This document shows, piece by piece, positions 16,794 to 63,505 of a DNA stretch of 64,000 nucleotides; the first letter of the stretch is position 1; each line of letters begins with the position of its first letter. A program made the translations under genes and the position numbers. This DNA comes from Paragordius varius (lineage: Eukaryota > Animalia > Nematomorpha). The notes below the pieces were generated by a model. The model was not told the origin of the DNA, did not search any database, and was given only the letters and a program-made list of their open reading frames with translations. The stretch is taken from positions 12,276,001 through 12,340,000 of the forward strand of contig OZ176052.1 in NCBI GenBank assembly GCA_964247055.1, read 5' to 3'.

Positions 16794-17644
16794 GTGTAGA
16801 CTTATTTAAATTAAATAATATTTTTTTAGCCTAAGTGGCTATTTTTTTAAATTTGTGTGCATATTTAGTCAGCCTCCACGGTAAAACAATTTTGGTAAAT
16901 TAAGCTCCAAACAAAATATAGCCAATATAAAGGTTTCAAATAAAAGTTTTTAAATATTAAAGACACATTGAGCGATGCAAATATTGTGGAATTTGAACCT
17001 GATTTTATGTCACTGAAAATTTTTATTTAACTTTATAACTTTTCTGATTTTGAAGTGGTTAGATAGATAATTAGGTAACTGTTTAATCGAGGCTTACAAG
17101 GTTTTAATAGCTCCTATGTTAAGTGAGAATCGATCAACAAACTATTATTTTTTACAAAAGTTTGGCCAGACTATTTTAAAATCATCTAAATGGTTAAAAG
17201 AAATGCATTATCAATACAGTAAAGAGGAAATCATCACATTTTAGGAAAATGCTATGATATCTTATTTCATAGAATAAATAGCCCTTTATCATGAAAGCAA
17301 TAATAAGCAAAGTTAAAATTCATTTAAAAACCACAAAAACTACCATTTATTACACAATAAACAAAGAAACACAGAGTCTGATATATTAATATAAATGTAA
17401 ACAATGTTTATGTTTTAGTTCTTCGTGCTTTGGGAGATATTGCAGGATGGCTTTGAAAGGCATAACATCGAATTGGCTTGTCCGTTTGCGCTGATATCAT
17501 TGTTCCCATTGACCGTTCGGAGAATAAACCTTGTTAAACATATACGATACAACATTAGCATCATAACAAGTAATTGATACTTCTAAAATTAACCTTTAAT
17601 GTTTTGTGTTGCATGACATGATGTAACAAGAAGGAAGTTGTTTA

Positions 17645-19575
17645 TCAAAGAAGCCCAACTTTACTGCTACTCCTTTCTGCAAATTGGTCATAAAAATCTA
17701 AATATTTATGGAAGAGCACATAGGACTTAACTTTACGCACTTCTTTACTTGTTCTATTTTTTACCTTTTTATCGTCAAATAGAAACCATTTATCACGTAA
17801 ACAATACGCGACATAATGACCTATATTGCACAATCTTCCTTCGTGTGACAAAATTCCAATTAACTCGGCAGAAAATCCAGCCAGGGCTGGGATATTAAGT
17901 TCCAAATTATTTTTAAAAAATTCATTGACTTTCTTTCCCTTGATGTCAAACCTTTGCAAATGAATAATGAATATCGTCGGCATTTCAAACAATTCCGTTT
18001 GTCTAGTGACAGTTCCCACTTCGGAGCAACTTTATTTAGATAAAATATAATACTTAGGGCAAATAAAATCTTCCAATAGTTCTGGTTCAAAATACGAATT
18101 TAAGCAATCGGAAACCGATTGATAGTTGCAAATCGGTAGACTTAACCCAATACTTTCCTCCAATTTGTATGACACGTTATCGCAATAACAGCATTTCACT
18201 AATAATTAATAATCTTTTACTTGTTAATTTAAAGGTGGTGTTAAACAATTTTCTAACGGAATCATTCTTTTTAGAAAGGGAGTTAATCAAATTAAACCTC
18301 ATGACAATCCTCCATGGCGCTTTTGTTTATTTTATGGTTCCAATCTCTATATATATAATAAAAACATATATACAGTTTAATGACTTCAACAGATCGGGAA
18401 CATCGACGTCTTGATGGTCGTTCAAACCATTGAGTATGTTTTTAAGTTTGTTTCTAATTGGTTTTCCGATTTGATCAAGGAAATCAAAAATGGAATAAAA
18501 GGCTTGTATTATACTGTTGGCATAACTTGTATTGCCCTTATTGACGATTCCTATCGGTTTTTTCTTTTTTATAGCTATACTACTGGGTTGATCTCCGCAT
18601 TCTTTATAGTCATCAAGATATTTTTCACAAATTGTTTGGGATTCATTTTCCTTAGCTTGATATGCCTTATCTGATGTTTCTAAATTAAAATATATATTTG
18701 TCTCATTTTTAATAACAATATTTAACAAAGCGAAGGCCTCGTCTTTTTCAACGTTTAAATTTCGTATTTTCATACTCGTTTTCCGATACATTGTTATATA
18801 TGTAATAGTTGAGGGGGCGTGTCATTTTCATAACTGTGTAACAAAAGCACTTCGTCTTTTTCAACGTCTAATTTGGAATTTTGATAGTTTAGCTTTATAT
18901 TTTCATTTAAATAATAAGCTTGAAAGGGCATCGTGTCATTTTCTTAACTGTGTGACAAAGGCACCTCGTCTTTTTTTAAGTTTAGTTTGGTATTTTGAGG
19001 CACGTTTTCTGATGCATTTTCATTTGTTTATTTACTAAATGGACAGCGGTGAATTAGAGTTGATTTCTTCTAAACTATTTTTCATTTTCATGCAACAATT
19101 TGTAAAGAGTCGTTTAAATTTTTGAATTATTGAAACTTTTTTCTTTGACCCTATATCCGATTCCTTTTTAATAATATCTTTATCATTTCCGCTATCTATG
19201 TAAGGTATTAGATAATCATAACATAAGAAACCAAATGCAATTTATGTTATTAAAAATATTAATTTCTTCACTTAACAATGTAACTTTCTCATCATTCTTG
19301 AGTATTGATTGTATTCCACTTGAATCATCATCATTGGGTAACGGGTGTTTTGTTAAATTAGTATCTTGTGGGGTTTTGACTATCCTCTTCTTTTTGCAAC
19401 CTAAAGATAGAAAAAAGTTAGATTTGAATGAAAAAAAAAAGATTTAGACTTCTATGGTGACTTCTCGTGTTGGTGTTGTTGGGTTTCCTTTGTCGGTGAA
19501 CCTAGAATTTTCAAACATTTATCAAAAAGTAAGAAGTTTTGTAGAGAGCGTTTTTTTAATAAGCGTTTTAGGCAT
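17645..19575 (-). pseudogene. USP (peptidase C19) paralogue A; catalytic Cys to Ser, probable pseudogene
   Basis: Cys box reads GIVNKGNTSYANS (AGT instead of TGT); His box HEGRLCNIGHYVAYC and WFLFDD are intact. A -5/-1 compensating frameshift pair follows the Cys box, and a 5-nt deletion after EDCHEV gives TAA. Confidence 0.85.
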
Positions 19576-20559
19576 GATTAAGAGTTTTTAGAATTGCTTA
19601 TTTATATTTTTATTTGATCAATGTAGACATGATAATATTAAAATTATTTTCAACTTATGAAAATAAATTATACTTTGACTTATTCGTTAAAATGTGTGTA
19701 ATTATGCGCTAAAATATATCTTTTATTTATTTAATTTGACCATAAAAGTTATTTGATATACGCAATTGTAGGTTTTTCCTTATATGCAAACTAAGTAATT
19801 TTTAACCCGACTATTTGAGTTATAATTCAAAATCATTTTTTGGTTGCGCAGATAAAAATTTGCTAAAACGATTTTTTTTCCTAACAAGGGATTGATTTAA
19901 AAAGAAAATGGTTAGCAGAATAAAACCTAATTTATCTAAAACTCATTAATGCGATTTCAATAATACTTATTATTAGTACTATTCGATTTTGCTCTAACTG
20001 GGGTAACTGATAAAAGCGTCTTTAATTTTAGGTTTTAACCATCGATATTATCTGTCGAAACTAAAATATTTTTTTAACGTATATTGATTGGGGATCGTAG
20101 GTAAAAAGATGTTCAAAACCCTAAGAAATCGAATAACCTTTGTTTTAGTAATTTTATCACAGTATAAAATGCTTTGAAAGAATAATATTGAATAGATCCC
20201 AGTGAGAGGCTTTGAATCAATTTTCTGGAAAACGTGGAGGCCCATTTATATATAAGTGGAATTTTTCTCATTATTGCGCCGATATCCAAGCTTTTTAAAT
20301 TAGCCCCTGAATATAGGCCCAAAGGTGTCATAAAAAATTCCCAATATATCGCGTCTTTGGACGTTTTTTAAAAATCGTGTAGGCTTTTTTCATCTTTAAC
20401 GAAACCTAGAAGGCTCATTTTTTTGCTCGCGAATTTAGCCATTCTTTCCTCGTATGTCATTATTAATATTAAATCCAAATATTTTACATTAAAAGCCAAC
20501 AGCATGTAAGGGCGAAATAATTTTGCCAAGGAAGACGCGTACTTTGGAGGAATGCTATT

Positions 20560-20915
20560 ATGTTCAATATGATTAAATATGGTCTGATCTATTGTGTTGC
20601 AAACGCTTCTATTGATTACCTCTTGTATAAATTTAGCTTTTTTTGTCCAGAAAATATTAACGTGGTTATACCGATAAACCCAACTATATGCACAAGATTA
20701 TGGTTAAAACTTGTTTTAATAATTATTATCAAAACCAAACCGTTATTGATTGCAAAAATGTTTTTACTGAATGGGAAAATGTTTTCGAAATACTGGATAA
20801 TCGTATAGATTGACTGGGGAATTGTTTCAATTAGGAAAACATTTTCATTCATTGAAAATGTTTTTAGACTGGGCTGTAGTATATTTTTTAAATTTCTTAT
20901 TGTTAAATAATGCAA
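20560..20915 (-). mobile_element. Possible N-terminal remnant of a Tc1/mariner-type (DUF4817-like HTH) transposase; copy at about 36580-36930
   Basis: ENVFLIETIPQSIYTIIQYFENIF and downstream LGLS...KKLNLYK resemble this HTH family. The match is weak and degenerate. Confidence 0.35.
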
Positions 20916-21065
20916 TTATGTATATTTAACATGAAAATGTTATATATTATGTCAAATTTTCATTAAACCCGTTTGTTTTAAAAATGTATAGGTCTTAGAA
21001 GTCTCTCTCTGACATCTTTAATAAAGTTGGTAAATTTAAAATTATAATAAATTAATTCTCTAGAT

Positions 21066-22676
21066 CAGGGCTTCTTAAACTTTTGTAGTTCCCCACCCAT
21101 TTATGTGCATGTTTCTCAACGACCCCAACAAATATAAAAGAAATTTCGGTTTTGAGAGATTGACAATAAATCTACATTTTTCATAAATTTCTATAACATT
21201 TCTGATTCATAGTAAATTTATACAACTAGCTGGCCCTGTCACGCTTCGTGGCGTAGTCTCACCGATAATTATTCTAAATAATTTGCAATAAATAGAGTTA
21301 ATGGAGATAAAAAATAATAATAAACATATTTAATAAGAAAAAATGTCTTTAATTATTCTTTTATGTTTTGCATAGGCTAAAATATTGTGTACTCAAAATG
21401 ACCATATTTAATCCGTCCCTTCTTAAAGTTAATATATAACTATCATTGGATATATTTTAAGATTTTTGGTTTAAAAAATCATGGTTAAAAGTTTTTTTTA
21501 AAATTGTGTTTATACAACTGGGATCAAGGGATATAAAAAGTAAATTATTTGTGGCCCCTTTTTAAAGAAAAGAAGATATTATACAAATTCCCTAGAAATG
21601 TGTTTAATTGAACTCGTATGGCTTCTTAAGTTTTTCGAAAATTAGCTCCGAAATTACACCTATCTTGTATTGCGTCTCAGTTTTAAACCGGTAGACCCCT
21701 ACCCATAGACCTCTATGGAAAAAGCGCTGAGTTAAATTTTTTGCCTTTATAGGAAATATTTGGAATCATCTTTGATACCATCGTCTCATGGGCTATTCGA
21801 AAAAAACCTCAACACTAAATCGTTATATGATGGCGTTTTAGGGCATAAGGCCCCAAATTAACGGTAATAAAAAACCCGACCTTAATTTTTACCTAGTTAA
21901 GGGTAATATTTCAAGCTTTTAATGAGCTCATATGGCTTCATGAACTTTCTGTAAATAAGCTCCAAAAAAACTCAATTTTTTATAGTGGCGCAGTTTTAGC
22001 GGCTATCCGTTTGCCCAGCAGACAATATTAAAAAACGCAAGACTATAATTTTTGCTTTTAACAGAGAGTAACTCGAATCCTCAGTGAATTTTAACGGTCT
22101 CATATCCTGGGCGAAAAATTTAGTTTTTTTAAAAAAATGGCATTTTACGGGGGGAACGGGTAAAAAGAGAACCTAAATTAAAAAAGTAAGCCGACTAGGT
22201 TCGGCGCAATCGAAAAAAGTAATAATTATCATATTTGAAATCGAATGGTCCAACACGTTTTCCGTATATATGTATCAAAGAGACGATTGTTCTGTTTTGT
22301 TTTCAAAAGAACCCGTTTTTCACACGGTGTGGGCCCGAACTCGGAGCCTAAATCAAAAAAGGGGAAAGCTATTCTCTGGGCATTCGTTAATAATTGTATT
22401 TTTTTGACATTTGGATTTAAATGATTTTACCGGTTTTCCGGAAGCAGATCACAAAGCCAAAATTTTCCATTTTTATAAATATATAGATTGTAATGATTGG
22501 AATAGAAATGCTGGTATAAATAGTTCTTCAGAACCAGAAAATTATATAATATATTTATCTACGATGATTGTTATTTTTCTTTATAAAAATTTTACAAGTT
22601 AAAAACATTTTTTGTTAATCTCTTTTCTTATCATTCGCGTCAAATGGGGTCGCGATCCATAGTTTAAGAAGCCCTG
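21066..22676. mobile_element. hAT Buster-type MITE carrying a nested Helitron
   Basis: Perfect 15-bp TIR CAGGGCTTCTTAAAC / GTTTAAGAAGCCCTG with a perfect 8-bp TSD CTCTAGAT (21058-21065 and 22677-22684). Confidence 0.95.
21226..22487 (-). mobile_element. Non-autonomous Helitron
   Basis: On the minus strand: 5' A|TC start, a 3' CACG-AAG-CGTG hairpin about 10 nt before a CTAG|T end, and no TSD. These are canonical Helitron termini. Confidence 0.8.
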
Positions 22677-22711
22677 CTCTAGATTATTTTCCTTAGAACA
22701 AGCGTTGATTA

Positions 22712-23910
22712 CCAGGTGTAGTCTAAGGTAATTACGGCTTTTTGGTAAAAAACGTAATTGAGGAAATCAATTATTTATTTTATTCGAGATATTCTCCTTA
22801 TAAAAATTCCTCCAGCTCTTAAGTTATGAATGCCATGATTGGAAACTAAATGTTTTTTGGTAAACCATCTGTCAAGCCATTTTCAAACGTTTTCCAAATT
22901 ATTAAGCTGCTCTCTGCAAGCATATACCATGTTGATGCGAGCAGGGAATAGTGATAGCCAGGTCAGGAGAGTTCAGCGGATGCAAAAATATTTTCCCGAA
23001 GCGATTATAAGGTGTCTTTTATTGGTTTTGCCGTGTGGGACGCATTGTTATGTGGCAAAATTTATCGTCCTGTCTTGGGGCCCATTTTGGTCGTTTTCCT
23101 TAATGCATTAATTTAATTAATCATTTTCTGCAGATAGAATTTTGTATTAACGTTTCGGGCTTCTTAAGCTTATAATGCACAACAGCGCTTTAATCCACCA
23201 GACACATTCATGGTTTTACCGAAGTGTTTTATTTTGATGTTGATGGACCAGTTGTCAACATAGAAGCCATTTCTCTCTCAATTTAAAACCACTCCTCACC
23301 ATCTTACAATCCATGCAGAATGATATGCTTTTGTGGCGTGGAAGCAGGATTTCTCAAGTAGATTGGTGATTTTATAATTGTCAAGCGAATTGTCTAATCA
23401 GTATTTACTGAGTCCATCTCATTTTGTATACATCGACTGGTTGTGATACACATATGAAATGAGTTGGAGTTGAGTCATCATCCAATTTGTCTTGCACTTC
23501 GTCTTCGCAGCTGTGTGGTCTGCCATGGTGCCCACTCTCTTTCATATTAAAATCATTTAAATATTTAAACCACAGAATTGAATCGATGGAGCATGTACAC
23601 CATATTTTTTTGTGAGCAAACAATGACTTTTAACATTCTTTTTCTTCTGATGTATAAGAAAAGCAGTGCATCCCGTATTCGTTTTTTAGGTACATGAGAG
23701 CTCGCTTTTGACAGGATCTGTCTGTGTCGTCGGATGTCTGATGGGTCAAATGGCGTCGTCAAATTAATCGGTTGAGTACTTTTTTGTCTTGTTATATTAG
23801 TTACACTGGTATTATTTACATTTGGTGCATTAATTAAAATAATAAAGATATTGCACGAAATGTCTATATTTTTTATAAAAAACTATTATTTTTTAAGCCT
23901 TAATTTTTCA
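22712..23910 (-). mobile_element. Decayed near-full-length mariner element (copy at about 38702-39880)
   Basis: TA|CCAGGTGTAGTCTAAGGTAATTACGGCTTTT terminus. Broken frames give VQDKLDDDS, HNNASHTAKPIKDTL (cf. HDNARPH), HPLNSPDLA (cf. HPPYSPDLAP) and KWLDRWF. Confidence 0.82.
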
Positions 23911-24930
23911 CTTTATCGTCTCGTTGGGTTTACCTTGAGGTATGTAATGATACGTTAAAAATATAAGGTATGCATGAATTGTTATTGCAATTAAGTGGGA
24001 AAGAGTGTATTATTGGGTTACATTATTTATTTTTATATCCTAACTTGATATCCTACAGAACATTAAGTATATAGAGTTAGTCCTATATATTTTATACCCT
24101 AAATTCTATACCATTACCTCTTAATGGTGACAAGTAGTTGTTTATTCTACTATTAGTGTATCAATGTATCATTTATCCAATGTTATAGACAAATCTGATA
24201 TGAAATGCCACTAGTTGTGGTCGTCTGCATTAGATCTATATTCGCGGTATAGGGGATGTCATTCCTGGCTAGCCCTCCTTCTTCTGGTCTCGCGTCCTTT
24301 CGTCTCCTGTCTTTATATATTTTGATCTTTTTTTCAACAAATACATTCTTGATTTTACCGCTCTACCATTTCCAGTATCCACCGACTGAGTTAACTGTCA
24401 TTGCTTACTCCCATGCGCTACATGAACAATACAATTCTCCCACATCGTAAGCGTTTTTTCCAGGGTGCATTACCCAACTTTCATTTTAGGTCTCTCGCAG
24501 TGGGTCCTAGAATTAGGCCGGAGTTGGTGTGCCATTATCTTCAGGCCAGCTAGAAGAATGGTTAATGTTATTCAAAGGATTAAAATTTTTTGGATGTGGG
24601 AGGTAAGCAGTTGTGAGCTCTTCAAAGGCGTGTGTATATCGCAAGTGATGCGTCGTATGCACCTTTTTATGAAAACTTGTATGTTTTTGGCATGTATGTG
24701 CGTGTTACGCCACGAGCATTAGTATATTACGCAAGGATAATCATGCATTTCAAGATTTTTAATTTATGTTTAAGCCCGACTTTCTTGGATTGCCATATAT
24801 CTCTGACACCGACCGACTAATTGGCAGCAAGCTTATTTTTATATTTCATAATGGTGATCACATTGGTATTATAGATGATAATGGACATCCCTTAGTTTGA
24901 TTTCACTGGGGCAGGTGAGAGAGCCTAGAC

Positions 24931-27649
24931 CAGGGGTGGCCAACGAGGTGACCGCGACAACTCAAAAAGTGACCGCCTGAAAATATTTTTTTTAAAAAAT
25001 TTTATTGATTTTTTTCGGATAGTTGGCTACTTCTGAGCGAATTTAAATTTAAAATACAAAAAAATACGGTTTAAATTAAAAAAAAACGTCTAAGAAAAGG
25101 GTGTAAAAAAATTATTTTATTAATTATAATTCATATGTTTTGGAGCATTTGCATTAAGACTTAAAATCAGTCATTGCCCTTGAATATATCAAAACTTTGA
25201 GCAAAGCTTATTCATAAATCAGCATAATCGTGAAGTTAGATTTGATTTGATACACCAAAAGTAGGTTTTTAAAACTTATATTTTAGAATGAGCCAAAAAA
25301 AGTTGTACAGATACAAGAAAGATTGGGAGCATGAATACTTTTTTATTATGATAAATGAAACATCACCTGTCTAATATGCAATAGTACTGTAGTTGCTTTG
25401 CCCAAAAAGTCAAATATTGAAAGACATTATAGATCTCTGCATCCACATTACTCCAAAAACTACCCCTTACAAACTCAAAAACGCAACATTAAAGTAAAGG
25501 AATTAAAAGAACAATTATCCGCCTCACAAAATAGCATACTTAAATACAACAAAGACTATAAAAATGCTACGATTGCTTCATTCTAGGTAGCGGAAATACT
25601 GATTCGGAACAATAAGCCATTCCAAGATGGTGAAATATTTAAAGAAGCCTTTATTAGCGCTTGTGATATTTTATTTGAAAATTTTGATAACAAAAATAAT
25701 ATTATGACAGCTATTAAAAGCATAAGCTTATCGAGAAATACCGTTATGCGCAGGGCTGAAGCTATTAGTAATAATCTTGATAAAATTTTACATGAAAATA
25801 TTAATAACTGTATTTTTTTTCCTTGCAACTCGATGAGTCCACCGATTATGTTGGAATCGCCCAATTATGCATTTTTATTCGTATGATATTTAGTGATTTA
25901 TCTGCAAAGGAGGAATTATTAACTATAATACCTCTCCACGAACGAACCAGAGGGCAGGATATTTTTGATTCTTTTTATAAATTTATCACAGATACGAAAC
26001 TTCCCATCGTAAAACTCGCATCTATAACTACTGATGGAGCTCCAGCTATGATTGGCGTTAACAACGGCTTTATCGCTTTATGTAAAAATCACAGTGCATT
26101 TCCCAAGTTCATTGATTACCATTGTATAATCCATAATCAAGTTTTATGTTCAAAAGTTTTAAAATACCATCATGTAATGAACCCCTGTTTTAAAATTGTT
26201 AACGCCATTCGAACAAAAAGCTTGTCCCGCCGCCAATTTCGAATTTTGTTAAATGAGTGCGGCGTGGAATATGGAGAACTTTTATTACATACTGATGTAA
26301 GGTGGTTGAGTCGTGCCGCATTTTTAATTAGATTTAGGCAACTTTTACCACAAATAGAAATTTTTTTAGAGAATTCTAAATTTTCATACCCTGAATTGAA
26401 AGATCAAGATTGGCTGCTTGATCTTGCATTTTTATGCGATATCACGGAAAAATTGCATAAATTAAACATCCAATTACAAGGAAAAGATAAAACAATAATG
26501 GATATGATGGGTGCTTTAAAATCTTTTAAGGAAACACTAACAGTAGTAGAAACACAATTAAAAAACCGAGATTTAAAACATTTTTTAATCTGGCAGCGGT
26601 GTCTGAAAAAATAGAGAATCTCTCTTTTGAAAAATATGCAGATGATATTGGTCTGCTTATTAATGATTTTGAAAAACGATTTTCATCTATAAATAAACTT
26701 GAAGACATCGCTATTTTTTTATCATGCCCATTTAATAATAATAATAATGTTGAATATATTGCTCAAAAACTCAGCCACTTTCTTGGTGTACCAAATTTAG
26801 CAGAGTTGGAAGAGGAATTAATAAATGTTAAATGCGATATCCATCTAAAATCATTAGGATCAGATATATATAAATTTATAAATAAAGATAAATACCCCCA
26901 TATTTGGAAAACCGCTGCATTATTCAATTCTTTTTTTAGATCCACATATTTATGTGAATCGGCTTTTTCAATTATGAATGCTATCAAAACTAAACAGAGG
27001 TCACAATTAACTAATAAACATTTAGAATCATGTTTGAGAATTGCTTTGACTTCATTTGAACCTAATTTAGATAAACTTTCTGAATTTTTTCGCAGTCGGG
27101 CGTTTTAAATATTTTTTTCTTTATTAAATATGGATGTTTATCGAGTTGTATTTTCGCTTAGGAAAAAGCCGATTTACTAAAAAATATGTGGATAGAATTA
27201 AAACTGATACAATTTTAATGTACTCTTATTTATGTTCAAATTATGGTTCTAAATTGGAATGCTATTTTTTATTTCTTTTATTTTTTGTATCATAATGTAT
27301 TCTCCCCTGTAATTTCAAATGCATTGTTTAAATTTTTATATTGTAAAATTTCATATAATAGAAATTTAATAAATAAATATTTTGAAGTGTTTTATGTTGG
27401 TTAAAAAATTAAGGTAGTTAATAACCCGTTGTCTTTTAATTAAAATTATTTTTGTATTTGGTTGATAGATAAAAAAATTACAATTTTAAAATGGTTTAAA
27501 CAAGTCACTCTAATCTGTAAAGCAGGTATATACATCATTTAAAGTGTTGATTGAGTTTTTTTGATAAATATTTCTGGGTGACCGCGAACTCTTTTTTTAA
27601 CAAAAAAGCCAAAAAAAAGCTCGCGACAAAAAAAGTGTGGCCACCCCTG
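24931..27649 (+). mobile_element. hAT Buster-type transposon, 2719 bp, present in unit A only
   Basis: TIR CAGGGGTGGCCA / TGGCCACCCCTG with a perfect TSD GCCTAGAC (24923-24930 and 27650-27657). The empty site with a single GCCTAGAC is at 40710-40717. Confidence 0.97.
25288..27108 (+). pseudogene. Buster/GTF2IRD2-like hAT transposase, disrupted
   Basis: BED finger (TCLIC...IERHY...H), LDESTD, SITTDGAPAM, HCIIH, VRWLSR and STYLCESAFS. It has three frameshifts (about 25370, 25820, 26600) and one in-frame TAG (25584-25586). Confidence 0.93.
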
Positions 27650-28248
27650 GCCTAGACCATACCGACCTGGTAAAGCTCTGCAAGTTGATGTGGAATGTGC
27701 GGTATTTTTTTGATCTTATCGAAATATCCCAATTTAGGCATTCCATGTTATCTTTTATAGAATAATAAACTAATCCATAATAAATCATACTTATAACCTT
27801 AATATAAAATAAAAAACTGTTTTTATGGCATATAACTTAGAGAGGAATTATTTTATTTCCCACAACTTTTATGTGAATACCGAAATAATATACATTGATT
27901 TCCTTGTAATAAATTATATTCAGACCCTAAATGTAATATTAATATTTTATATTTCCAGACGAAAAACGCGACAACTTTGAATGTTTGGGAAATGGATGGC
28001 TGAGCAGAGCAAATAGCTATCTCATCACATTTGACCAGAATATTATGTACAATAAAAAGCCCCTTACATATATATATTTATCATTAATTCTATTTATCCA
28101 AATGACGTTTCATTGATATGCCTATTGCATCATGTCTACGTTTAGTATTAACAATCAATGACATATTAATAATTATAAAGTACTGTATATTTTTGCAATT
28201 AATATTTTCAAATTACAATAAATAGTACAAGGATCTAATTGATCAATA

Positions 28249-31048
28249 ATGTTTATAATTTGCAAAACTTGTCAAAAACCCTATGATCAATGTAGTACTT
28301 GCTTAGTGCCATTTATGAATGAAGAAAATTCAAATTTCCAAACTTTCAATTTATCCCCAGAAAATGTTTCATCCCCTTTTCAACTGAAAACAATGAGTAC
28401 ATTTCATCCACCTTACACAACCGCCACCAATTCATCTCCAACTAACAATTATCCAGATGTTATTAATACAATTAACAATGGATCACCTAAAACGATGGTA
28501 GACACCAAAGTTCACATGGTGAATTATTTAGATTCTAAAACTGGCCTTACAAACGTCACTCCGGTATGTAAATCCTTTTCGTTGCAAAAATAAGGGATTT
28601 ATATTTCAAACGCGTAATTAAATAATATGTTAATGGGTAATATAGAAAACGATTTTCTCTGTCTTAAATATTATGGTCGGCTTTTTATGGTAAAGTTTTA
28701 TTAAAAGCAATTTTGTAGTAGTATTGTTTGTCAATATTAAACAGACCACAATAACAAATATTGGCTCACTAACTTCAATGATAAATTTTAAAATAATCCA
28801 TAATTTTAGGTATTAAATAAAATATTGGTGCATTTATTCACATATTTATTCGTAGGCTCAATAGTTTTAGCAATAGACATTTAAATAGAGATGCTCTACA
28901 AATAACTGTAAAATAAATGAACAGATTTTATTTCGTGCTTCGATAAAAAAATCCTTCAAAAATTTTAGTAGCTTCTTTAAGCATTTATCAAATACTAAGA
29001 ATCGTTGAAACTTACACGGCTAAAATTACAGAATGTAAACCGTCATTGTTTTTTTATTCAATCATATTTATATCAAAGTTTTTTAGAAAATTTACGTATG
29101 ATTTATGGGGTTAGGGTTGATAACCAAACCATCAAAAAAACAAAATTATATCCGTAAAACTACCCTAATGCTAAGAAGAAAAATAATTGGTAGAGAGAAT
29201 CCATATAATTATATACCGCTTTAATAAAGGAAACAAGAAGCAAAAATGATTTGTTAGCCGGAACGATTTAGTTATCGATTCCGCAACCCTATAAATCATA
29301 CAACGTATCTGCTAACATAAGCCCAAATTTTTAAATTTTGACGATTTACATATTCGCATTTAGCTAATACTACTAATATTACTTACCAGATACAATCGCC
29401 AATTACTTCAAATACTGCCTTTAACGAAATAATAAATGAAAGCAATTTAGATACAAAGTTATTGTCGAATACTCCAGAAATCAGTAAGTTGCAACAAGCA
29501 TTTCCCTTTCTTTCTATACAGACATTACTCGGTATGTGGCTTGATAATTATGTACAAGGTGGTAGTAATGAATCAACAAATAATTTAGCCAATAAATATC
29601 CGTACGAAAACGGAAATGGAGATGAAGAATACATAGAGAAACAAAAGGAGGAGAAACCGTCAATTATGTATAAACCGAATGACAGTTGGACAATCTACAG
29701 ACCTAGTCCATTTGAGCCTTGGCAACAGACAAAATCTGGCCCATGTATATTACAAGGAACCGCCATATCCACACAAAATAGAAAAAGTAAATTAACGTCG
29801 CTTAATTTTGAAGAGGTTTTACGCCAAGAAGCCCAAATTTGCCAACAGCTAGCGGAATATTCTCAACAAGTTTCGCAAAACTTGCAATCCATATATGAGA
29901 CATTTAATTATGAACGGTGTAGAGAGCGCAATATTGAAAAACAAATCGCCAAGAGATTGCTGAAAAAACATACAGGACTAAATGTGGATTCCCTCTCTGA
30001 TCTCACTTCAAAACCCAAAAATAAAAGTTACATAATATATACAAATATATCATTTTGTAGAAATTGTTTTCCCTTACGAAACATGAATGATAGATAAATC
30101 TTAGTGATACTTAAACTATTTTTTTGAAAGTTCGTTATTTTAAGGTAGTTATATGGGGTGAAGGTGAAATTTATTATGACTCTTACTATTTTGAAAAATT
30201 ATGATATGAATGGATAAAAGTAATAATTTATAATGATGGTTATTATTGATGATAACCGTTTAAAAATAAATTTTGTTTCCTTTAAAGAACAAAGGCCATC
30301 TAAGACCGCTGATGCCGATAAACCCAAGAATGGAAGTAAAAAAAGGGAGAAAAACGTTTCCAAAGAAGAAAAACCCAAAGTCTATGCAACCAGTAGTGAA
30401 TCCTCTTCCACCCCCTATCAAAATTGTAAGAAGGGAATTAACAAGCTTTTAACGGTTGAAAGTGAGTGTGATTTTACAGATTCATCTACATTAACACATA
30501 CCCTACCGCCACCTCTTCCCCCTCGTCAAGGTTCATTAACAAGTAAACCGCCTACATCCGCCACACCAATTAATACAACACCGCCTTTCCTTCTACCTCG
30601 TCAAGGTTTGATGATGTTTAGACCACCGCTGTCTCAGCCGAGATTTAGAGCTCCCGCCTTTTACCCATCTACTGGTCTTCAAAATCCACCACCGCCTTCA
30701 AGACCGTTGAAACCACCAATGCCGCTACCACCAAATTTTGCACAAGGGCCGTCCGCATACATTAATAACCAATTTGGGGTTCCCGCTTTTTCTCCATCTA
30801 GTAATTTTCAAAAACCACCACCGCCCCCAAGACCTTTGAAACCGCCTATGCCGCTACCATGAAACTTTGCTCCGCCGCCCTCAAACATCAATAACCCAGG
30901 ATTCGCTCAAGTCTTACCGCGTAACCGTTCACCCACCCCGAATGCAGAAACTCAAATAAATAACGAGACAAATTGTTGGAATTGTTGCAGTGCAGAACCA
31001 ACCTCAGTACCGAAAAATAGAAATAATGGCTTTGTCCCTGCCAAATAA
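28249..31048 (+). pseudogene. Orphan proline-rich protein, paralogue A (premature stop)
   Basis: Exons 28249-28563, 29390-30026 and 30288-31048 splice in phase (0 and 1). CGA to TGA at 30860-30862 truncates about 60 C-terminal codons relative to B; the truncated product could still be expressed. Confidence 0.7.
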
Positions 31049-50840: not shown

Positions 50841-50944
50841 TACTCGTCTTGGCCACCAATATTAACTGGGAACGACAATGTAAAGGTAACGGTAAATAAA
50901 TTTATTATATATTGTATATCACAAAAACAACGCTTTATATCATG

Positions 50945-50984
<40 letters not shown>

Positions 50985-51236
50985 AAGATAATTAGGTCTA
51001 ATGTATTCACATATATCAAGGTGAGATGTTTGCTTATATACAATTATCTCAAGGTATAATAATAATATTCACAAGTGGTGGGGAGGTTATAATAAGGAGG
51101 TTATAATAATATAATAATAGTACACAGATAAGTTAATAGGTTAATGTACTAATATATAACGAATGTTGTTTGTGTGGTTAATCTAATCGTGTAATAACAG
51201 GTCTATTCAAATTAGCCTGTCAGTTACACTCTAACA

Positions 51237-52022: not shown

Positions 52023-52897
52023 TTAAAATGTATTATGAAGGAGATGGCTATACACTGGAAAACTAAATTGAGTGAGCACAGTAGGTTCATCGCATTCGTT
52101 AAAAGTTAAAAAAGCTTACAAGATTTTTAAAAATAGTTCTTTAGACGCGATTTTGTGCGGCTCTTATTATTCATGACATGGGGCTTTTTGGTGTTTGCTC
52201 AAAAAGTTACCCGTCTATAACGCGGCGCATTAATGATAAAAAAATCATTTTAAAAATCCTTATGAGGTTCCAGAAAATTGGCATAAGGCTATATTGGCTC
52301 TGATTTTCCTTTCAAATCGTTTTTACTGGCATAAAACCGTAAAATACTGGGTATTCCATATGGATTTGTTCATCTTTTATAATAGAATCAATGCCAAATC
52401 AGTATAATTTTAAATAATTTGGTTGCCCAAGATTAAAATATCGATGGATTTGTAAAATGCACCCAAAATATTTTATCAGTTACTCCAGTTAGAGCATTGA
52501 CCGATAATAGTAATTAGAATTGTTTCTAGATCGCATTAATGGTCGGTTTTGGATACAGAATGTAAACCCTATTCTTGTTTGGGAAAAAATCGTTTTTAAA
52601 ATTTTTTAATCTCCGCAACCAAAAAATGATTTTGAATAATTTAAACTCATATAGTTGGGTTATTCGGAAAATTCATTTATTTGTAAAAAATAAATAAAAA
52701 ACTTCAATTGCGCATTTTAAATTGCTTTTATGGCCAAAATAAAATTAATAAAAATATATATCTCATCGCATAATTTAACGCATAAAAGAATTACTCTAAG
52801 TATATTTCGTTTTTAAAAATTGACAATAAAAAATTGTCATGACATTGATAAAAGATGTATAAAAAAATAGAATAAGCGATTCTAAAAACTCTTAACC

Positions 52898-54871
52898 ATG
52901 CCTAAAACGCTTATTAAAAAACGCTCTCCACAAAAATTCCTACTTTTTGATAAAAGTTTGAAAATTCTAGGTTCTCCTACAAAGGAAACCCAGCAACACC
53001 AAGAAGAAAAATCACCAAAGAAGTCAAAATCTTTTTTCTCATGCAAATCTAATTTTTCTATATTTTTAGGTTGCTGTCAAACGAAAAAGGTAGTCAAAAA
53101 CCCGCAAGATGCAAATCAATCAAAACACCCGTCACCCAACGATGATGTTTCAGCTAAAACACAAGCAAAACTCAAGAGTGATGAAAAAGTTATATTGAAA
53201 ACTGAAGTTGAAAGTAATATTTTCAATAAATTAATTGAAACATTTTGGTTTAATCTCATCTTATATTGATCTAATAACTTATATAGATAGCGGAAATGAT
53301 AAAAATATCATTCAAAAGGGATCGAATCTACCGTCGAAGAAAAAAGTTTCAAAACTTCAAAAATTAAAAGGACTCTTTACAAGTTGTTGCAAGAAAAAGA
53401 AAAATAACTTAGAGTATGAAATCAGCGAAACACCGCTGCCCACTCCCACAAATGATCTAAATGGTAATGTATTAGAAAAGAATCCCCAGAATACAAAATT
53501 AGACTTGAACGTTGAAAAAGGCGAGACCCTGCCTTTCTCACATAGATATGAAAATGACACGATGCCCCTTCAAGCTTATTGTATAAACGAAAATATATTG
53601 CAAAACAATCAAAATACCATAGACTTGAACGCTGAAAAAAACGAGGTCCTGCCTTTGTCACACAGTTATGAAAATGGCACGCCCCCTCAGGCCTATTACA
53701 TAAATGAAAATGTATTGGAAAACGAGTACGAAAAAACGAAATTAGATTTAGACGTTGAAAAAGACGAGGCCTTGTCTTTCTATAACAGTGTTAATAAAAA
53801 GGAGGCGAATGTATATATTAATTTAGAAACAATAGATAACGCGTATCAAGCTAAGGAAAATGAATCCCAAACAATATGTGAACAATATCTTGGTGAACGT
53901 AACGAATGCGGAGATCAACCCAATTATAAAATTGTAAAAGAGAAAAAACCGATAGGTATCATCAATAAGGGGAATACATGTTATGCCAATAGCATAATAC
54001 AAGCCCTTTACTCAATGCCTGATTTCCTACATGTGATAAAATCGGAAAGCCAATTAGACACAATTTTAAAAAACATATTCAATGGTTTAAACGACCATCA
54101 AGATGTCGATGTTCCCGGTCTGTTGAAGTCCTTAAACTGTAAATTTGTTTTAATTAAATATAGATTGGAACCACAAAATAAATAAAAGTGCCATGGAAGA
54201 TTGTCATGAGGTTTTACTCAATTTAATTAGCTCCCTTTCTGAAAAGAATGATTCCGTTAAAAAATTATTTAACACCACCCTTAAATTAACAAGTACTGGA
54301 TTATTAATTTGTAGCGAAATGCTGTTATTGCGATAACGTGTCATACAAATTGGAGGAAAGTATTGGGTTAAGTCTACCGATTTGCAACTATCAATCGGTT
54401 TCCGATTGCTTAACTTCCTATTTTGAATCAGAACTATTGGAAGATTTTATTTGCCCTAAGTATTATATTTTATCTATATAAAGTTGCTCCGAAGTGGGAA
54501 CTGTCACCAGACAAACGGAATTGTTTGAAATGCCGACAATACTCATTATTCATTTACAAAGGTTTGACATCAAAGGCAAGAAAGTTAATAAATCCGTTGA
54601 AAATGATTTGGAACTCAACATCCCAGCATTGGGCTCTGTCTTTTCAACCAATTTAATTGGAATGTTGTCACACGAGGGAAGATCGTCAAATATAGGTCAT
54701 TATGTCGCGTATTGTTTACGTGATAAATGGTTTCTATTTGACGATAAAAAGGTAAAAAATAGAACAAGTAAAGAAGTGCGTAAAGTTAAGTCCTATGTGC
54801 TCTTCTATAAATATTTAGATTTTTGTGACCAATTTGCAGAAAGGAGTAGCAGTAAAGTTGGGCTTCTTTGA
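52898..54871 (+). CDS. Ubiquitin-specific protease (peptidase C19), paralogue C, apparently intact
   Basis: Cys box GIINKGNTCYANSIIQAL, MEDCHE, two CxxC finger motifs (CCYC, CPNC), LIIHLQRF, His box HEGRSSNIGHYVAY and WFLFDD. Introns 54139-54163 (25 nt), 54293-54314 (22 nt) and 54460-54483 (24 nt) restore one frame. The N-terminal exon structure near 53000-53290 is uncertain. Confidence 0.9.
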
Positions 54872-57885: not shown

Positions 57886-60800
57886 TCATTTCGCATGGAC
57901 AAAGCCATTATAAACATTTTTTGGTTGTCCCGAGGTTGGTTCTGCACTACAACAATTCCAACAATTTGTCTCGTTATTTCTTTGAGTTGCTGCATTCGGG
58001 GTGGGTGAACGGTGACGTGGTACTTGAGCAAATCTTGGGTTATTGATGTTTGAGGGCGGTCGTGCAAAGTTTGGCGGTAGCGGCATTGGTGGTTTCAACG
58101 GTCTTGAAGGCGGTGGTAGATTTTGAAGACCAGTAGATGGGGAAAAAGCGGGAGCTCTAAATCTCGGCTGAGACAACGGCGGTCTAAACATTAAACCTTG
58201 ACGGGGTGGAAGGAAAGGCGGTGTTGTATTAATTGGTGTGGCGGATGTAGGCGGTTTACTCATTAATGAACCTTGACGAGGGGGAAGGGGTGGCGGTGTG
58301 GTATGTGTTAATGTAGATGAATCTGTAAAATCACTCTCACTTTCAACCGTTAAAAGCTTGTTCATTCCCTTCTTACAATTTTGATAGGGGGTGGAAGAAG
58401 ATTCACTACTGGTTGCAAAGACTTTAGGTTTTTCTTCTTTTGAGTAAATGTTTTTCTCCCTTTGCTTTTTACTTCCATTCTTTTGTTTCCCATTTCCATC
58501 AGCGGTCTTAGATTGCTTTTGTTCTGTAAATTAAATAAAAATGATTTTTTAAGGATTATTATCATGGATATGACCACAGTGAATATAAATAATTACTATT
58601 TAAGAGGCATATTAAAAAAATTCTATAAAATAAACCCATATATCTACATTATTTTAAGAGACAACAATAAATGTTTTAAAAAATTAAATTATTTCTTTTC
58701 TCTAATAATTAACTATTAATGATCTATTATTCATTTAGTTGTTTCTTAGGAAAACAACTCCGATAAAATGATATATTTTTATATGCAACTTTTGTTTTTG
58801 GGTTTTGAAGTGAGATCAGAGAGGGAATCCACATTTAGTCCTGTATGTTTTTTCAACAATCTCTTGGCGATTTGTTTTTCAATATTGCGCTCTCTACACC
58901 GTTCATTATTAAATGTCTCATATATAGATTGCAAGTTTTGCGAAACTTGTTGAGAATATTCCGCTAGCTGTTGGCAAATTTGGGCTTCTTGGCGTAAAAC
59001 CTCCTCAAAATTAAGCGAAGTCAATTTATTTTTTCTATTTTGTGTGGATATGGCGGTTCCTTGTAATATACATGGGCCAGGTTTTGTCTGTTGCCAAAGC
59101 TCAAATGGACTGGGTCTGTAGATTGTCCAACTGTCATTCGGTTTATACTTAATTGGCGGTTTCTGCTCCTTTTGTCCCTCTACGCATTTTTCATCTCCAT
59201 TTCCGTTTTCGTACGGATATTTATTGGGTGAATTAATTGCTGATTCATTACTGCCATCTTGCACATAATTATCAAGCCACATACCGAGTAATGTCTGTAT
59301 AGAAAGAAAGGGGAATGTTTGTTGCAACTTACTGATTTCTGGGGTATTCGACAATAAACTTGTATCTAAAATGTTTTGACTTCCTGTTTCGTTAAAGGCA
59401 GTATTTGAAGTAATTGGCGATTGTATCTGGTAAGTAATATATTTAGTAGTATTAGCGTAATTTTGCGAATTATTTTGTGGATCGCTAAAATTTTGTTAAA
59501 ATTTGGGCTTATGTTAGTAATATTACTTTCTATGATTTATCGGTTGGGGTTTAGCCAAATCGTTCCCATAGGCATTTAACAACAAACTTAGGTTCAAACC
59601 ATTTTCACTGATTGTTTTGATAATTAGGGCGGTATTAAAGTATTTATTATTCTCTATCAATTATTACTCTCATTAGGCGTAATTTTATTTTGATGATCTG
59701 CAAAGAGTATAATACAATCACCCCAACTGTGGGGAAACAATTTGGCTATTAACCCCAACCCCATAAGTCATATAAAATAAATGCCAACATAGGCCCAAGT
59801 TTTTACAAAACAACTCATATAAATATGATTGATTAAAAAACCATTAACGGTTAACTCTATACACTGTTTAGTTTTTTTAACTCAAAGGTAACCAAGTTAT
59901 TCCGGTACTAATATTTGAAAAGAAAATAGTACAATTTTAGAGGTATTTTTTGCGAGGCCATAAAAGGACAAATCAATAAAATCTGTTCATCTCTTATATT
60001 ACAGCTGGATTGATGTTGGTACATTCTATTGTATCTTTCTTAATAAGGTCAACTGCTAAAACTAATAAGCCTACCATTAATTTATAATTAACATCAATAA
60101 AAAAATTATATTTTTTAATAAATGATAATAGTAGTACGATAACCGGTAATAAAACGCATTTGGGCCACAATTTGTTAGTGTGGTCTATTTAAGTTCTGTC
60201 CACAAACAATAGCATTAGATAATTCTAAAATATATTCATCAAAATATTCCAAATATAATTTTTGGGAGGTTATTTTCGCTTTACTTACCTATCAACATAT
60301 GATTTTATTACTCGTATGAAATATAAGTCCCCAATTATTTTTACAACGAAAATGTTGTGCGTACCGGAGAATCCAATAATTTAATTTATTTGATCTCACG
60401 TCCCGAGGAAATCAAATACAGCTTCTACCTTTGCTCTATGTGGAATCAATTCAAAATACACTTCTTTTAGCCTGGTAGTATCATTATATTTGACACCCAT
60501 TCAATTAGATCTAGCAAAGTAGTATATTCAGACAAATAGACTGTGTCTTGCCGACACTGCCAGATTTTCAAGGAAGTTCGCAATAATCCATGAATTTAAT
60601 AGAAATTTGGCTCAATATCGGCAAGACACATCTACTCTGTCTGAATATACTACTTTGCTAGATCTAACTGAATGGGTGTTAAATAATGATACCACCAGGC
60701 TAGAAGAATTGTATTTTGGTAAAATTATACCACGTAGAGGGAAGGAAGGGGATATAGTTGATTTCTTCGGGACGCGAAATCAATTGAATGAGTGTAAGAA

Positions 60801-61461
60801 AAATACAGTACTGGATTTTCCGGTACTTACAATTTTTTCATTGTAACCAATGGGGACTTATATTTCATACGAGTAATAAATGAATATATTGACAAGTTTT
60901 AGAATTTAATGATTTACTATGTGTTATGCAAATCTGAAAGATATACTTTGTTTTTATATCATAATTTTCTGTGTTACATGCAAATGTGAAATACATACCT
61001 TGGTTGTATATCATAATTTTCACCGTTATTTGAATTGTATTATTTTCTATATTTTTTGTGTACTATGTAAATATTATATCCTTTGTTACTTGAAATTTTA
61101 TTGATATAATGCAAATTATGTACAACTAAAATTAGTATATATGAACCCTAAAAAACCGAATAAATTAATTTCTTATTTCTTTATTATCTCCTCACCTAAC
61201 ATTTACAAGTTAACACTGTGTCAGCTTTAGTGTCATCCATTGTTTTAGGCGAAACATTGTTGATTGCATTTTGATACTTGTTATTGGGAGATGAAATGGC
61301 GGGGGAGTAAGGATGGGGAAATGTATTTGTTGTATTTAATTGAACAGGTGATGAAACATTTTGTGGGGACGAATTAAAAGTTTGAAGATTTGAATTTTTT
61401 TCATCCAACATAGTACTACATTGGTCATAGGGTTTTTGGCATTGCAAACTATAAAACTCAT
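57886..61461 (-). pseudogene. Orphan proline-rich protein, paralogue C (exons 2-3 open, exon 1 frameshifted and rearranged)
   Basis: Exons 59426-58790 and 58523-57886 are open and spliceable. Exon 1 (ATG at 61461) has a 4-nt deletion early on and is separated from its donor by extra sequence and a hairpin. Confidence 0.65.
60305..60885. repeat. Imperfect inverted duplication (two arms of about 280 bp, centred near 60590)
   Basis: GGCAAGACAC...TCTGAATATACTACTTTGCTAGATCTAA...CCGGTAC...GGGGACTTATATTTCATACGAGTAATAAA is present on both strands. Confidence 0.9.
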
Positions 61462-63505
61462 TATTGATCAATTAGATCCTTGTACTATTTAAAGTAATTT
61501 GAAATATATAATTACAAAAATATACATTACTGAATAATTATGTATGACGATGTCTCTGATTGTAAAACCACGTAGACATGATGCAATAAGGAATTAATAA
61601 AACTTTAAATCAATGTAAATAGAAAAATGATAAAATATGTATAATATTAATTTTGCATAATTTTGGTAGAATAGAATGAGAATGCTTTTCTGGTCAGTTA
61701 TCCATTTTCCAAACTTTCAAATGTGTTTGTCGCATTTTTTGTCCAAAAATATAAAATATCTAATATTAATAAAGATTTATTGAATGTCTAAATATAATTG
61801 TATTACCAGAAAATCAATGTATATTGATTTCGGTATCCATATAGAAGTTGTGTTATAATAGTGTCTCTCTAAGTTATCTGCAATACTCTTTTCGAAAAAT
61901 ATTTTTCATTTTTGTTTTGAGGTTATAAGTATGTATAAAATGTGAATTGGGTGTTTGACTTTATACAAGAAAACGTAGAAGGCTTAAATTGATATATTAA
62001 GATAATATAAAAATTCCATATTCGATATGTCTATTCGCACAGGAATTTATTAACAGAACGCTACGGTCGAAGCGTCTCAACTGTCCCAGAGCTACGAGTT
62101 ATCCAACATCTTTTATAATAACAATGTGATTGCCATTGTGAAATATAAAATTGAGCTTGGTATTAATTCGTCTGTGGGTAGACTCGGAGCCTATGTCAAT
62201 CCAATAAAGTTTTGGGAATTTAATTAAAAAATCTCAAAATTATTTATCCCCCGCATAGCTTACTCTGGGTTATGGTATAACAAGCACAAATATAATAGAA
62301 AGATACACATTTTTATAAATAAATGCCTACATGGCACCTTTTGCAATATAATCTCCCCTTTATAGAAATCACAACTTCCTACCTGTCACATCCACATAAA
62401 CCTTGATACATCCCATAAGGTTGACCAGCCCTTTAGCTTAGTGGTTCCTTAAAGAAAAAGTAAACTATTGAATTCGCATGGGTCTACAGATTTAAAATTG
62501 CTTTATCATTATATTAAAGACCTGTTTTCACCCTAAGTGGTAAGTTAACCGGTAATTTAAAAACTTAGTCAATGAATTCAAAACAGTGTAAAAAATATAC
62601 TCTTGAGCTTTCATGGCCTACACGCTTCCATAAAATTACTTCCACGTCAATATTTAACCATAGCCCCTATTTTCACACTCAACTAAGCTAACTTGAAAGG
62701 CTAATTTTAAAAAATGGCTCAGTCACTTTCGGCGCAATTGTTAAACAATAAAAATCATGCCAGGCCCACACCTTTTCCGGGGTCGTGTTTCAAGGCCAAA
62801 AATCATCAAAAAAAATATTTTTACATGGGCGGTGCGGAACTGAGGGGCTAATCTCAAAAAATGAGTTAGTCACCCTCGGTGCATTTGTTATAAAAAGTAC
62901 ACAATTGAAACAGACTGCGCCTACACGCTTTACGGGAAAATCTTCAGGAGCTGGACAGAATGGCAAATTATAAAAAATGGCTTAATCACCCTCTTCGCAA
63001 TTGCAAAACAATATAAAAAATAGGCCATTCAATTTACATGGGCCTACATATTTCAAACTAATCTTCAACCTCAATTTATCTTAAACCCATATTTTCACAG
63101 TAAATGGGCTATATTGAGGGAATATTAAAAAGCTAACTAACTATGCCCATTCGGAATACGCCAAAGCCAATAATTCTTGCTTTTTTCATAAGTCTAGGGC
63201 TAAAATGTGGGCTTAATTAAAAAAGCGCTTAGTCATATTCAGCTCATTTGTAAAGCTTTAAAAAAGTATTGAAATTGAATACACGTTTTCTGGAAATGTT
63301 TATCCCAGACTAAATTCAAGTTAGAATTTTTAAAAACTACTGAAGGAAACGGTCCTAATTTAAATTTATGCTGCTATATTTATATAAATTATATAAATAT
63401 TCTAAAATATCTATTTAAAATTTTGTTTGAAAATAAAGTTCAGTGTCCAACTACTTCGACGCCATTTTTATTTTATAAAATTTTTGCAAAATATCGTCCA
63501 TTTAA

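Follow-up and report, generated by a model that had tools for sequence, protein, structure and literature searches.

A segmental-duplication array with a deubiquitinase gene and a proline-rich gene in the nematomorph Paragordius varius

Layout of the units in the window and of the array on chromosome C3

The DNA analyzed, called the window here, is a stretch of 64,000 nucleotides from Paragordius varius (assembly GCA_964247055.1, contig OZ176052.1, positions 12,276,001 to 12,340,000), and coordinates given without a chromosome are positions within it. Three units of about 13 kb are present, each composed of a compact gene for a predicted USP-type deubiquitinase (USP), a 4.6-kb spacer, and a gene for a proline-rich (Pro-rich) protein. 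Self-BLAST of the window confirmed the alternating layout of three USP and three Pro-rich copies described in an earlier note on this DNA, with unit A (16910-33096) and unit B (33710-46304) in direct orientation relative to each other and unit C (52574-62394) inverted. No third gene was found in the unit, and the open reading frames of the spacer were without a Pfam match. The identity between units A and B by self-BLAST was 77% in the USP part, 93% in the spacer, and 89% in the Pro-rich gene, and the units of the window diverged from each other by 7 to 23%. The spacer of unit A (20010..24633, plus strand) holds an old dispersed repeat of about 1.5 kb. The spacer of unit B (36007..40581, plus strand) is found again in six further array units, and its part at 37152-38666 is a repeat found on many contigs with 78 to 85% identity.

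The window is the right-hand end of a larger segmental-duplication array with at least 11 units, which covers about 340 kb of chromosome C3 (11.99-12.34 Mb). The count of three copies in the earlier note was correct for the window but too low for the locus, because the array runs on beyond it and contains 11 Pro-rich copies, at least 7 of them intact, and 7 USP relics, only one of which is intact; an additional, older Pro-rich copy is located at 11.59 Mb. Pro-rich copies, USP relics, and spacers follow each other in matching order and orientation, and neighboring USP and Pro-rich genes are arranged tail-to-tail or head-to-head in at least 6 units. The amplification of a two-gene module, as described in the earlier note, is supported. 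Complete units are confined to this stretch of chromosome C3, with dispersal limited to the 1.5-kb repeat, and the phylogeny of the Pro-rich copies tracks their physical sub-clusters. At its left edge, the array has a remnant (11940..13167, no strand assigned) of the spacer located 3' of the USP gene in unit C. This remnant matches 57475-55637 in inverted orientation with 77 to 79% identity in the self-BLAST, and no Pro-rich gene adjoins it; in the window, no Pro-rich exons were found left of 28246.

Two transposons interrupt this arrangement. A hAT-family element (24925..27655, plus strand) with a pair of 18-nt terminal inverted repeats is present in unit A only and absent from unit B; its transposase reading frames at 25823-27108 gave a Pfam match to Dimer_Tnp_hAT. 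Pieces of a Ty3/gypsy-type retroelement (46626..52024, minus strand) are located between units B and C, comprising gag-like, protease, reverse transcriptase, RNase H, and integrase parts with Pfam matches to RVT_1, RT_RNaseH, Integrase_H2C2, and Asp_protease_2. Internal duplications within this retroelement region were also visible in the self-BLAST.

Copies of the two genes and the selection acting on them

The exon models of the Pro-rich gene were derived solely from conservation among the paralogues and from GT/AG sites. Copy B (orphan-B, 41325..44174, plus strand) is an intact three-exon model of about 571 amino acids (exons 41325-41648, 42490-43120, and 43414-44174) with a CxxC-x7-CxxC at the N-terminus, a long helix in the center, and four PxxPxR motifs encoded by exon 3. 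Copy A (28249..31048, plus strand; exons 28249-28563, 29390-30026, and 30288-31048) has a premature TGA at position 30860 and loses the last 62 residues or so. In copy C (orphan-C, 57886..61471, minus strand), which is the basal copy of the array with a support of 96/99, exon 2 (59426-58790) and exon 3 (58523-57886) are open, the latter with an in-frame deletion of 129 nt, and exon 1 is disrupted by two deletions, one of 4 nt right behind the ATG and one of 15 nt that takes out two of the four N-terminal Cys residues. In at least seven copies the exons are open, an ATG is present, and the splice sites are GT/AG.

Comparison of the Pro-rich paralogues yielded a dN/dS ratio of about 0.35 (pooled 0.34 to 0.38) with NG86, a method giving rough estimates in a genome with 30% GC, and the terminal-branch pN/pS of the intact copies was 0.29 to 0.40. 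The exons diverged by 5 to 6% versus 12 to 18% for the introns, being two to three times more conserved, and the indel runs were multiples of three in 47 of 48 exonic versus 35 of 178 intronic cases. The Pro-rich gene represents a real, constrained, multi-copy protein family under purifying selection.

The product of this gene is disordered for the most part; it has a four-Cys knuckle at the N-terminus, a single long helix, and the PxxPxR motifs, which are predicted class II SH3 ligands judging from their sequence. An AlphaFold2 model of exon 2, based on a nine-row alignment, had a mean pLDDT of 56, and its confident part was one long helix only. A sequence search of the PDB with the Pro-rich protein returned no match, and a search of the language-model Atlas with a copy of the type found on chromosome C1 no usable one. 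Exon 3 of copy B contains 4 PxxPxR motifs compared to 0.67 expected after shuffling (P=0.002), in agreement with the richness in such motifs claimed before. They are conserved across the paralogues, mostly as a non-canonical variant in the C1-type copies.

The USP copies of the window differ in their state. USP-A (16910..19888, minus strand) is a pseudogene with Ser in the position of the catalytic Cys and, in the third of its coding exons, a 5-nt deletion that leads to a stop; its last exon (17645-18019) is still open. USP-B (33710..36013, minus strand) is a pseudogene as well; its Cys box lacks 1 nt, and it has more frameshifts plus four stops in the last exon. Among the USP copies of the array, only USP-C (52898..54871, plus strand) has kept its catalytic domain intact. 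Its coding exons lie approximately at 53291-54138, 54164-54292, 54315-54459, and 54484-54871, and the catalytic frame is continuous only on removal of three putative micro-introns (GT..AG; 25 nt at 54139-54163, 22 nt at 54293-54314, and 24 nt at 54460-54483), the sites of which are conserved in the paralogues. The domain consists of the core only, has about 250 residues, and is free of insertions. It follows a rapidly evolving extension of about 300 residues, whose repeats of about 42 residues carry Y-[IV]-N-E; an enrichment of Y-[IV]-N was seen both in these N-terminal repeats and in the C1-type Pro-rich copies.

Pfam profile PF00443 matched exons of USP-C with E values of 1e-7, for the exon at 53235-54185 that covers profile positions 1-39 with the Cys box and the catalytic Cys, and of 1.5e-20 to 2.5e-20. 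The last exon covers profile positions 141-254 with the His box, its catalytic His, and the following Asp, and the zinc ribbon has both of its CxxC pairs; searches were run with one exon at a time, and the middle two exons are too short for a Pfam or PDB score of their own. The PDB matches were generic, to USP8/15/21/2 for the C-terminal exon and to USP28/35 for the Cys box, and word searches with the last exon and the Cys-box region, at a limited query length, found no close relatives. The enzyme is a divergent USP.

The N-terminal extension of USP-C (52898-53269) is in a different frame due to a 4-nt insertion near 53237-53240 that is absent from every other copy. A 43-nt GT..AG stretch was considered as an intron rescuing this frame and rejected. 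Its length fits neither of the two intron size classes of the genome, and the insertion is therefore regarded as a genuine frameshift within the extension. Copies USP-C and orphan-B had been reported as the only fully intact members of their families; this is correct within the window, but in the case of USP-C it is true of the catalytic domain only.

Every other USP copy on chromosome C3 contains frameshifts or stops or has lost the Cys box. The pN/pS ratio of the catalytic domain was 0.19 for USP-C and also for a copy on chromosome C1, and 0.47 to 0.65 for the others, with 0.56 on the terminal branch of USP-A and 0.47 for USP-B; USP-C and the intact C1 paralogue differ with a dN/dS of 0.22. 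Purifying selection continues to act on the catalytic domain of USP-C, and the other USP copies of the array are decaying. The picture of birth-and-death decay in the earlier note agrees with the broken copies seen in both families. These data show that the two genes differ in the selection acting on them.

Copies elsewhere in the genome and the Gordionus homologue

Both families also occur outside the array. Unlinked Pro-rich copies are located on C1 at 2.27-2.63 Mb, on C3 at 11.59 Mb, and on C4 at 4.98 Mb, many of the Pro-rich copies have no USP nearby, and a USP cluster on C4 at 12.50 Mb is without a Pro-rich gene. An intact USP on C1 at 2.093 Mb is 37 kb away from Pro-rich-type genes, so that the families are near each other at two loci. 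The divergence between C1 and C3 is alike in both, with dS values of 0.44 to 0.62 for the USP and 0.58 to 0.72 for the Pro-rich gene, which indicates that the linkage is old and could be maintained. The USP tree is a star and does not trace the duplication of individual units.

The name "orphan" given to the Pro-rich gene before was too strong. A profile search of 1.84 billion representatives identified one homologue outside this genome, the unnamed protein CAK9297721.1 of Gordionus (E=2e-31), which has 667 amino acids and a BACK domain (E=6e-15). Gordionus is a horsehair worm, a parasitic nematomorph. Both proteins share the N-terminal CxxC-x7-CxxC, a Pro/Arg-rich tail, a central region with 34 to 40% identity over about 190 residues and a long helix at its end, and an exon boundary placed as at exon 2 here. 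The Gordionus gene retains four exons encoding the BACK domain, whose fold is characteristic of adaptors of cullin-3 ubiquitin ligases, whereas the copies described here are without them except for a relic in copy C; one representative was found for Gordionus in the profile search, compared to more than 20 Pro-rich copies in this genome. No Pfam match to BACK (PF07707) was obtained with the Pro-rich exons of the window, of C1, or of the 11.59-Mb copy. When the Gordionus protein was used as query, a word search retrieved nothing but this protein itself, and an Atlas search yielded nothing usable beyond BACK. Its gene has an RPAP3-like gene and a nuclear receptor as called neighbors, and no USP was found within the flanks of ±10 kb.

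The relic of the ancestral BACK-adjacent exon is located in intron 1 of copy C (60494..60804, no strand assigned) and was found by tblastn with residues 148-231 of the Gordionus protein (E=2e-12). It is a short inverted pair (60559-60804 on the plus and 60577-60494 on the minus strand), is non-coding, corresponds to the region just after BACK, and was retained by copy C alone among the array copies. A BACK match on C4 at 2.744 Mb, considered as the missing ancestor, proved to be an ordinary BTB-BACK gene.

Explanations for the pairing and comparison with known systems

The locus is probably a segmental-duplication array in which the Pro-rich gene was kept by selection and the USP was carried along, so that the pairing of both genes would represent inherited physical linkage and not a co-selected module. 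Unequal crossing-over along with inverted duplication may have spread the unit of about 13 kb, and the hAT and gypsy-type transposons would have inserted into the array afterwards. The Pro-rich gene derives from a BACK-domain gene that is shared with Nematomorpha, with loss of the BACK exons; the USP, which would have hitch-hiked, has become pseudogenized in all units but C, and one working USP-C together with the C1 paralogue may serve whatever role the USP has. The earlier note had preferred neither this passive co-duplication of neighbors nor a co-amplified functional pair, and had regarded unlinked occurrence elsewhere or in relatives as evidence against the latter. Since both families are found unlinked elsewhere in the genome, passive co-duplication is favored, and there is no support for a selected pair.

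Such a pair would consist of a Pro-rich adaptor or substrate with SH3/SH2-type ligand motifs and a dedicated USP, co-amplified because the dosage of the pair matters. Their adjacency in at least 6 units, the old linkage, seen at two loci and with dS values alike for both genes, the four PxxPxR motifs conserved across copies, the Y-[IV]-N enrichment in the USP repeats and the C1-type copies, and the cullin-3-adaptor fold of the ancestral gene are in agreement with it. It is nevertheless unlikely, considering that one of seven USP but at least 7 of 11 Pro-rich copies of the array are intact, that the sole intact USP adjoins the broken copy C, that Pro-rich copies without a USP and a USP cluster without a Pro-rich gene exist, and that the Gordionus homologue has no adjoining USP; moreover, the motifs are short, and the AT bias of the genome favors N, I, and Y. 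Since one enzyme could serve many adaptor copies, the lopsided retention is compatible with an interaction. In a ubiquitin-signaling module of this kind, more than 20 disordered scaffolds derived from the BACK gene by exon loss would dock with their PxxPxR and Y-x-N motifs, and the USP with Y-[IV]-N-E, on the same SH2/SH3 adaptor, and one enzyme would act with many scaffold variants; the old linkage would be a mark of such a module, a reading which is quite unlikely.

It is very unlikely that the entire region is dead and decaying, with frames open only on account of the young age of the copies. Several broken copies do occur in both families and transposons invaded the units, but the exonic conservation, the dN/dS of about 0.35, the nearly exclusive in-frame exon indels, and the pN/pS of 0.19 for the USP-C catalytic domain versus about 0.5 to 0.65 in the dead copies contradict this. 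Alternatively, the unit may be the cargo of a large self-copying mobile element, as the occurrence of both orientations and the dispersed repeat in the spacer might suggest; the restriction of complete units to one 340-kb stretch, the dispersal of nothing but the 1.5-kb repeat, and the lack of a transposase common to the units, with hAT in unit A only, make this highly improbable. An assembly artifact, either falsely duplicated haplotigs or a collapsed repeat, is extremely unlikely: the divergence of 7 to 23% between the units indicates that they are not duplicated haplotigs, they have private transposon insertions and deletions, and the copy phylogeny matches the physical sub-clusters.

Under the preferred explanation, a USP carried along with a selected Pro-rich gene, the locus is a natural experiment, in which a pair of unrelated genes was duplicated jointly on many occasions and one was kept. 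It documents a protein family that is young, constrained, still without a name, and traceable to a BACK-domain gene by exon loss, as well as a minimal USP catalytic domain with putative introns of 22 to 25 nt. It also warns that adjacency within segmental duplications should not be taken for functional coupling. None of these results overturns current understanding.

With the peptidase C19 cores of USP8, USP2, and USP21, USP-C shares the Cys box, the His box with Asp, and the two CxxC pairs; it differs from them in being split by three putative micro-introns, free of insertions, and located behind the long fast-evolving extension. The unit of the mammalian RS447 tandem repeat has about 4.7 kb and a single intronless open reading frame, whereas the units described here are about 13 kb long, contain two genes, are 7 to 23% diverged, and occur in mixed orientation. 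DUB/USP17 in RS447 is a lineage-restricted USP with local tandem duplication and many copies of doubtful function (PMC2874809), and both systems have in common that a USP-type deubiquitinase was multiplied by local tandem duplication. On the sequence level, nothing ties the USP described here to USP17, its best solved relatives being USP8/15/21/2 for the C-terminal exon and USP28/35 for the Cys box. A megasatellite of the USP17/DUB type has head-to-tail, near-identical units with an open USP in each; here, the identity is 77 to 93%, one of seven USP copies has an intact catalytic domain, and the retained gene is the neighbor. The array follows the birth-and-death model in its repeated local duplication, with some copies maintained and others pseudogenized or interrupted by transposons. 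It differs from this model in that two unrelated genes in one duplication unit met opposite fates, which provides an internal control for selection versus hitch-hiking.

Repeat units and genes in the window

Self-comparison of the window (C3:12,276,001-12,340,000), with a GC content of about 30% and part of a 110.5-Mb animal assembly of 44 contigs, resolved units A (16910-33096) and B (33710-46304) in the same direct orientation and unit C (52574-62394) in inverted orientation. Units A and B were 77% identical in the USP part, 93% in the 4.6-kb spacer, and 89% in the Pro-rich gene with its introns. Only unit A carries a hAT-family transposon (24925-27655), which has split ORFs for the transposase and a terminal inverted repeat pair of 18 nt, and gypsy-type retroelement pieces with internal duplications (46626-52024; gag-like, protease, RT, RNase H, and integrase) separated units B and C. 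The divergence between the units and these private insertions rule out a simple assembly duplication. Upstream of the array, positions 562-5707 were occupied by a large inverted repeat (1024-2230 versus 4600-3375, 88% identity) with shorter flanking matches.

Pfam PF00443 was matched by two exons of USP-C, the deubiquitinase gene of unit C: the one with the Cys box and the last one. Excision of three GT..AG micro-introns at 54139-54163 (25 nt), 54293-54314 (22 nt), and 54460-54483 (24 nt), the splice sites of which are conserved among the USP paralogues, restored the frame between them; the two middle exons were too short to be scored individually. The predicted catalytic domain would be a core of about 250 residues containing the catalytic Cys, a His box followed by Asp, and two CxxC pairs. 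Its last exon matched only generic solved relatives (USP8/15/21/2), as did its Cys box (USP28/35), and word searches with the last exon and the Cys-box region found no close relative. The N-terminal extension is composed of repeats of about 42 residues in which a Y-[IV]-N-E core is conserved (window 53500-53900; L003:191-1156) and evolved fast in all copies. A 4-nt insertion near 53237-53240, private to USP-C and absent from all other copies, shifts the first 113 or so codons into another frame and thereby divides the extension between two frames. A 43-nt GT..AG stretch could be a putative intron rescuing this frame, and the catalytic domain downstream of the insertion is still under purifying selection. 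In USP-A, Ser replaces the catalytic Cys and a stop arises from a 5-nt deletion; USP-B contains multiple frameshifts and stops.

Copy B of the Pro-rich gene, with exons at 41325-41648, 42490-43120, and 43414-44174, is predicted to encode about 571 aa; its model was built from the paralogues on contig C1, where exons 1 and 2 form a single ORF, and from GT/AG sites, with conservation among paralogues as the basis of the exon models. The protein starts with a CxxC-x7-CxxC motif, its conserved central region was predicted by AlphaFold2 as a single long helix, the only confident part, and its tail contains four PxxPxR motifs (0.67 expected), which are conserved across copies. Copy A is cut short by a premature TGA at 30860; in copy C, exon 1 is shortened and out of frame, and a further deletion removes 129 nt in frame. 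The earlier note had thus correctly described three units in which only USP-C, as regards its catalytic domain, and Pro-rich copy B look intact in their families.

Genomic copies and selection

Whole-genome searches showed that the array extends beyond the window, which covers one end of it, on contig C3. Between 11.99 and 12.34 Mb, the Pro-rich gene was present in 11 copies, with an additional, older one at 11.59 Mb, and the spacer had six further C3 copies with matching order and orientation, but only seven USP relics were found, all of them broken other than USP-C. At least seven Pro-rich copies, copy B included, had a start codon, exons that remain open, and splice sites that are conserved when the copy B model was projected onto those copies retrieved; of the remaining ones, a 1-nt frameshift affects one, and an insertion interrupts another. 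A repeat of about 1.5 kb without a long ORF inside the spacer (37152-38666; also approximately 21160-22690 and 10948-11285) is dispersed over many contigs at 78-85% identity, but the full unit is not; this repeat entered the spacer before the array expanded.

A diverged Pro-rich subfamily (about 55% identity), whose genes carry six 'EPIY[IM]NQ'-like motifs interleaved with PPLPPR-like motifs, resides on C1 at 2.04-2.63 Mb, with a relic on contig C4. C1-type relics also form a tandem array with a period of 5.6 kb (C1:2599588-2618098); stop codons common to three of the four repeats, the fourth having one extra, indicate that the amplified copy was already broken. C1 also has an intact USP paralogue (C1:2.093 Mb), 37 kb away from the closest Pro-rich gene, and a sub-cluster of compact USP genes about 55% identical to USP-C is located at C4:12501796-12511161; no Pro-rich gene was found near the latter (C4:12.50-12.51 Mb).

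Nei-Gojobori estimates from custom scripts gave a pooled dN/dS of 0.34-0.38 for the Pro-rich copies, which diverged by 5-6% in exons versus 12-18% in introns, and in which 47 of 48 exonic indel runs versus 35 of 178 intronic ones were multiples of three. The terminal-branch pN/pS was 0.29-0.40 in intact copies, 0.45 in the frameshifted copy, and 0.51 in copy C. Between USP-C and the intact C1 USP, dN/dS was 0.22, with a catalytic-domain terminal-branch pN/pS of 0.19 in both and 0.47-0.65 in the broken copies. Judged from these sequence comparisons, the Pro-rich family is maintained in many copies, and the USP in one copy per locus while decaying elsewhere.

Origin of the Pro-rich gene

A profile built from the Pro-rich paralogues and searched against 1.84 billion representatives returned exactly one match, CAK9297721.1 (E=2e-31) of the nematomorph Gordionus sp., a parasitic horsehair worm, so that the former designation of the gene as an orphan is too strong. 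This protein of 667 aa shares the N-terminal Cys motif, the central region (34% identity), and the Pro/Arg-rich tail, and it contains a BACK domain (Pfam, E=6e-15). Among the seven exons of its gene, those encoding BACK are located exactly at the intron 1 site of the Pro-rich copies. The locus has a GC content of 28%, similar to that of the window; the genes called beside it are RPAP3-like and a nuclear receptor gene, and no USP similarity was found in the ±10-kb flanks.

The 11.59-Mb copy precisely lacks intron 1 of the array copies (about 840 nt; 41649-42489 in copy B) while having intron 2, and the C1 copies (L030-L035) have a coding linker in place of intron 1; this intron, present in some paralogues and absent from others, falls at the site of the BACK exon loss. 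A non-coding relic of the exon following BACK (60494-60804, a short inverted pair) lies in intron 1 of copy C; it matches residues 148-231 of the Gordionus protein and is the sole such relic in the genome. Rooting the tree on the 11.59-Mb copy placed copy C at the base of the array (support 96/99), and two distant sub-clusters formed clades of their own. This suggests unit C as the nearest to the founder, with outward growth of the array from its region.

Probable passive co-duplication of the two genes

Unlinked occurrence elsewhere or in relatives, named beforehand by the earlier note as evidence against its proposal of a co-amplified functional pair, was found: both genes occur unlinked elsewhere in the genome, and the Gordionus homologue has no USP nearby. 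Together with the opposite fates of the genes within one duplication unit, this favours the alternative offered by the same note, passive co-duplication, probably with selection acting on how many or how diverse the Pro-rich copies are and with the USP hitch-hiking. A functional link between the USP and the Pro-rich protein may nevertheless exist, since the two genes have long been linked at two loci, as similar C1-C3 dS values of the families indicate, a single enzyme could serve many scaffolds, and Y-[IV]-N-type motifs exceed the shuffled expectation in both proteins; however, motifs this short carry little weight in a genome so rich in AT. The USP tree had the shape of a star. A known parallel for the local multiplication of a USP is USP17 in the RS447 repeat (PMC2874809).
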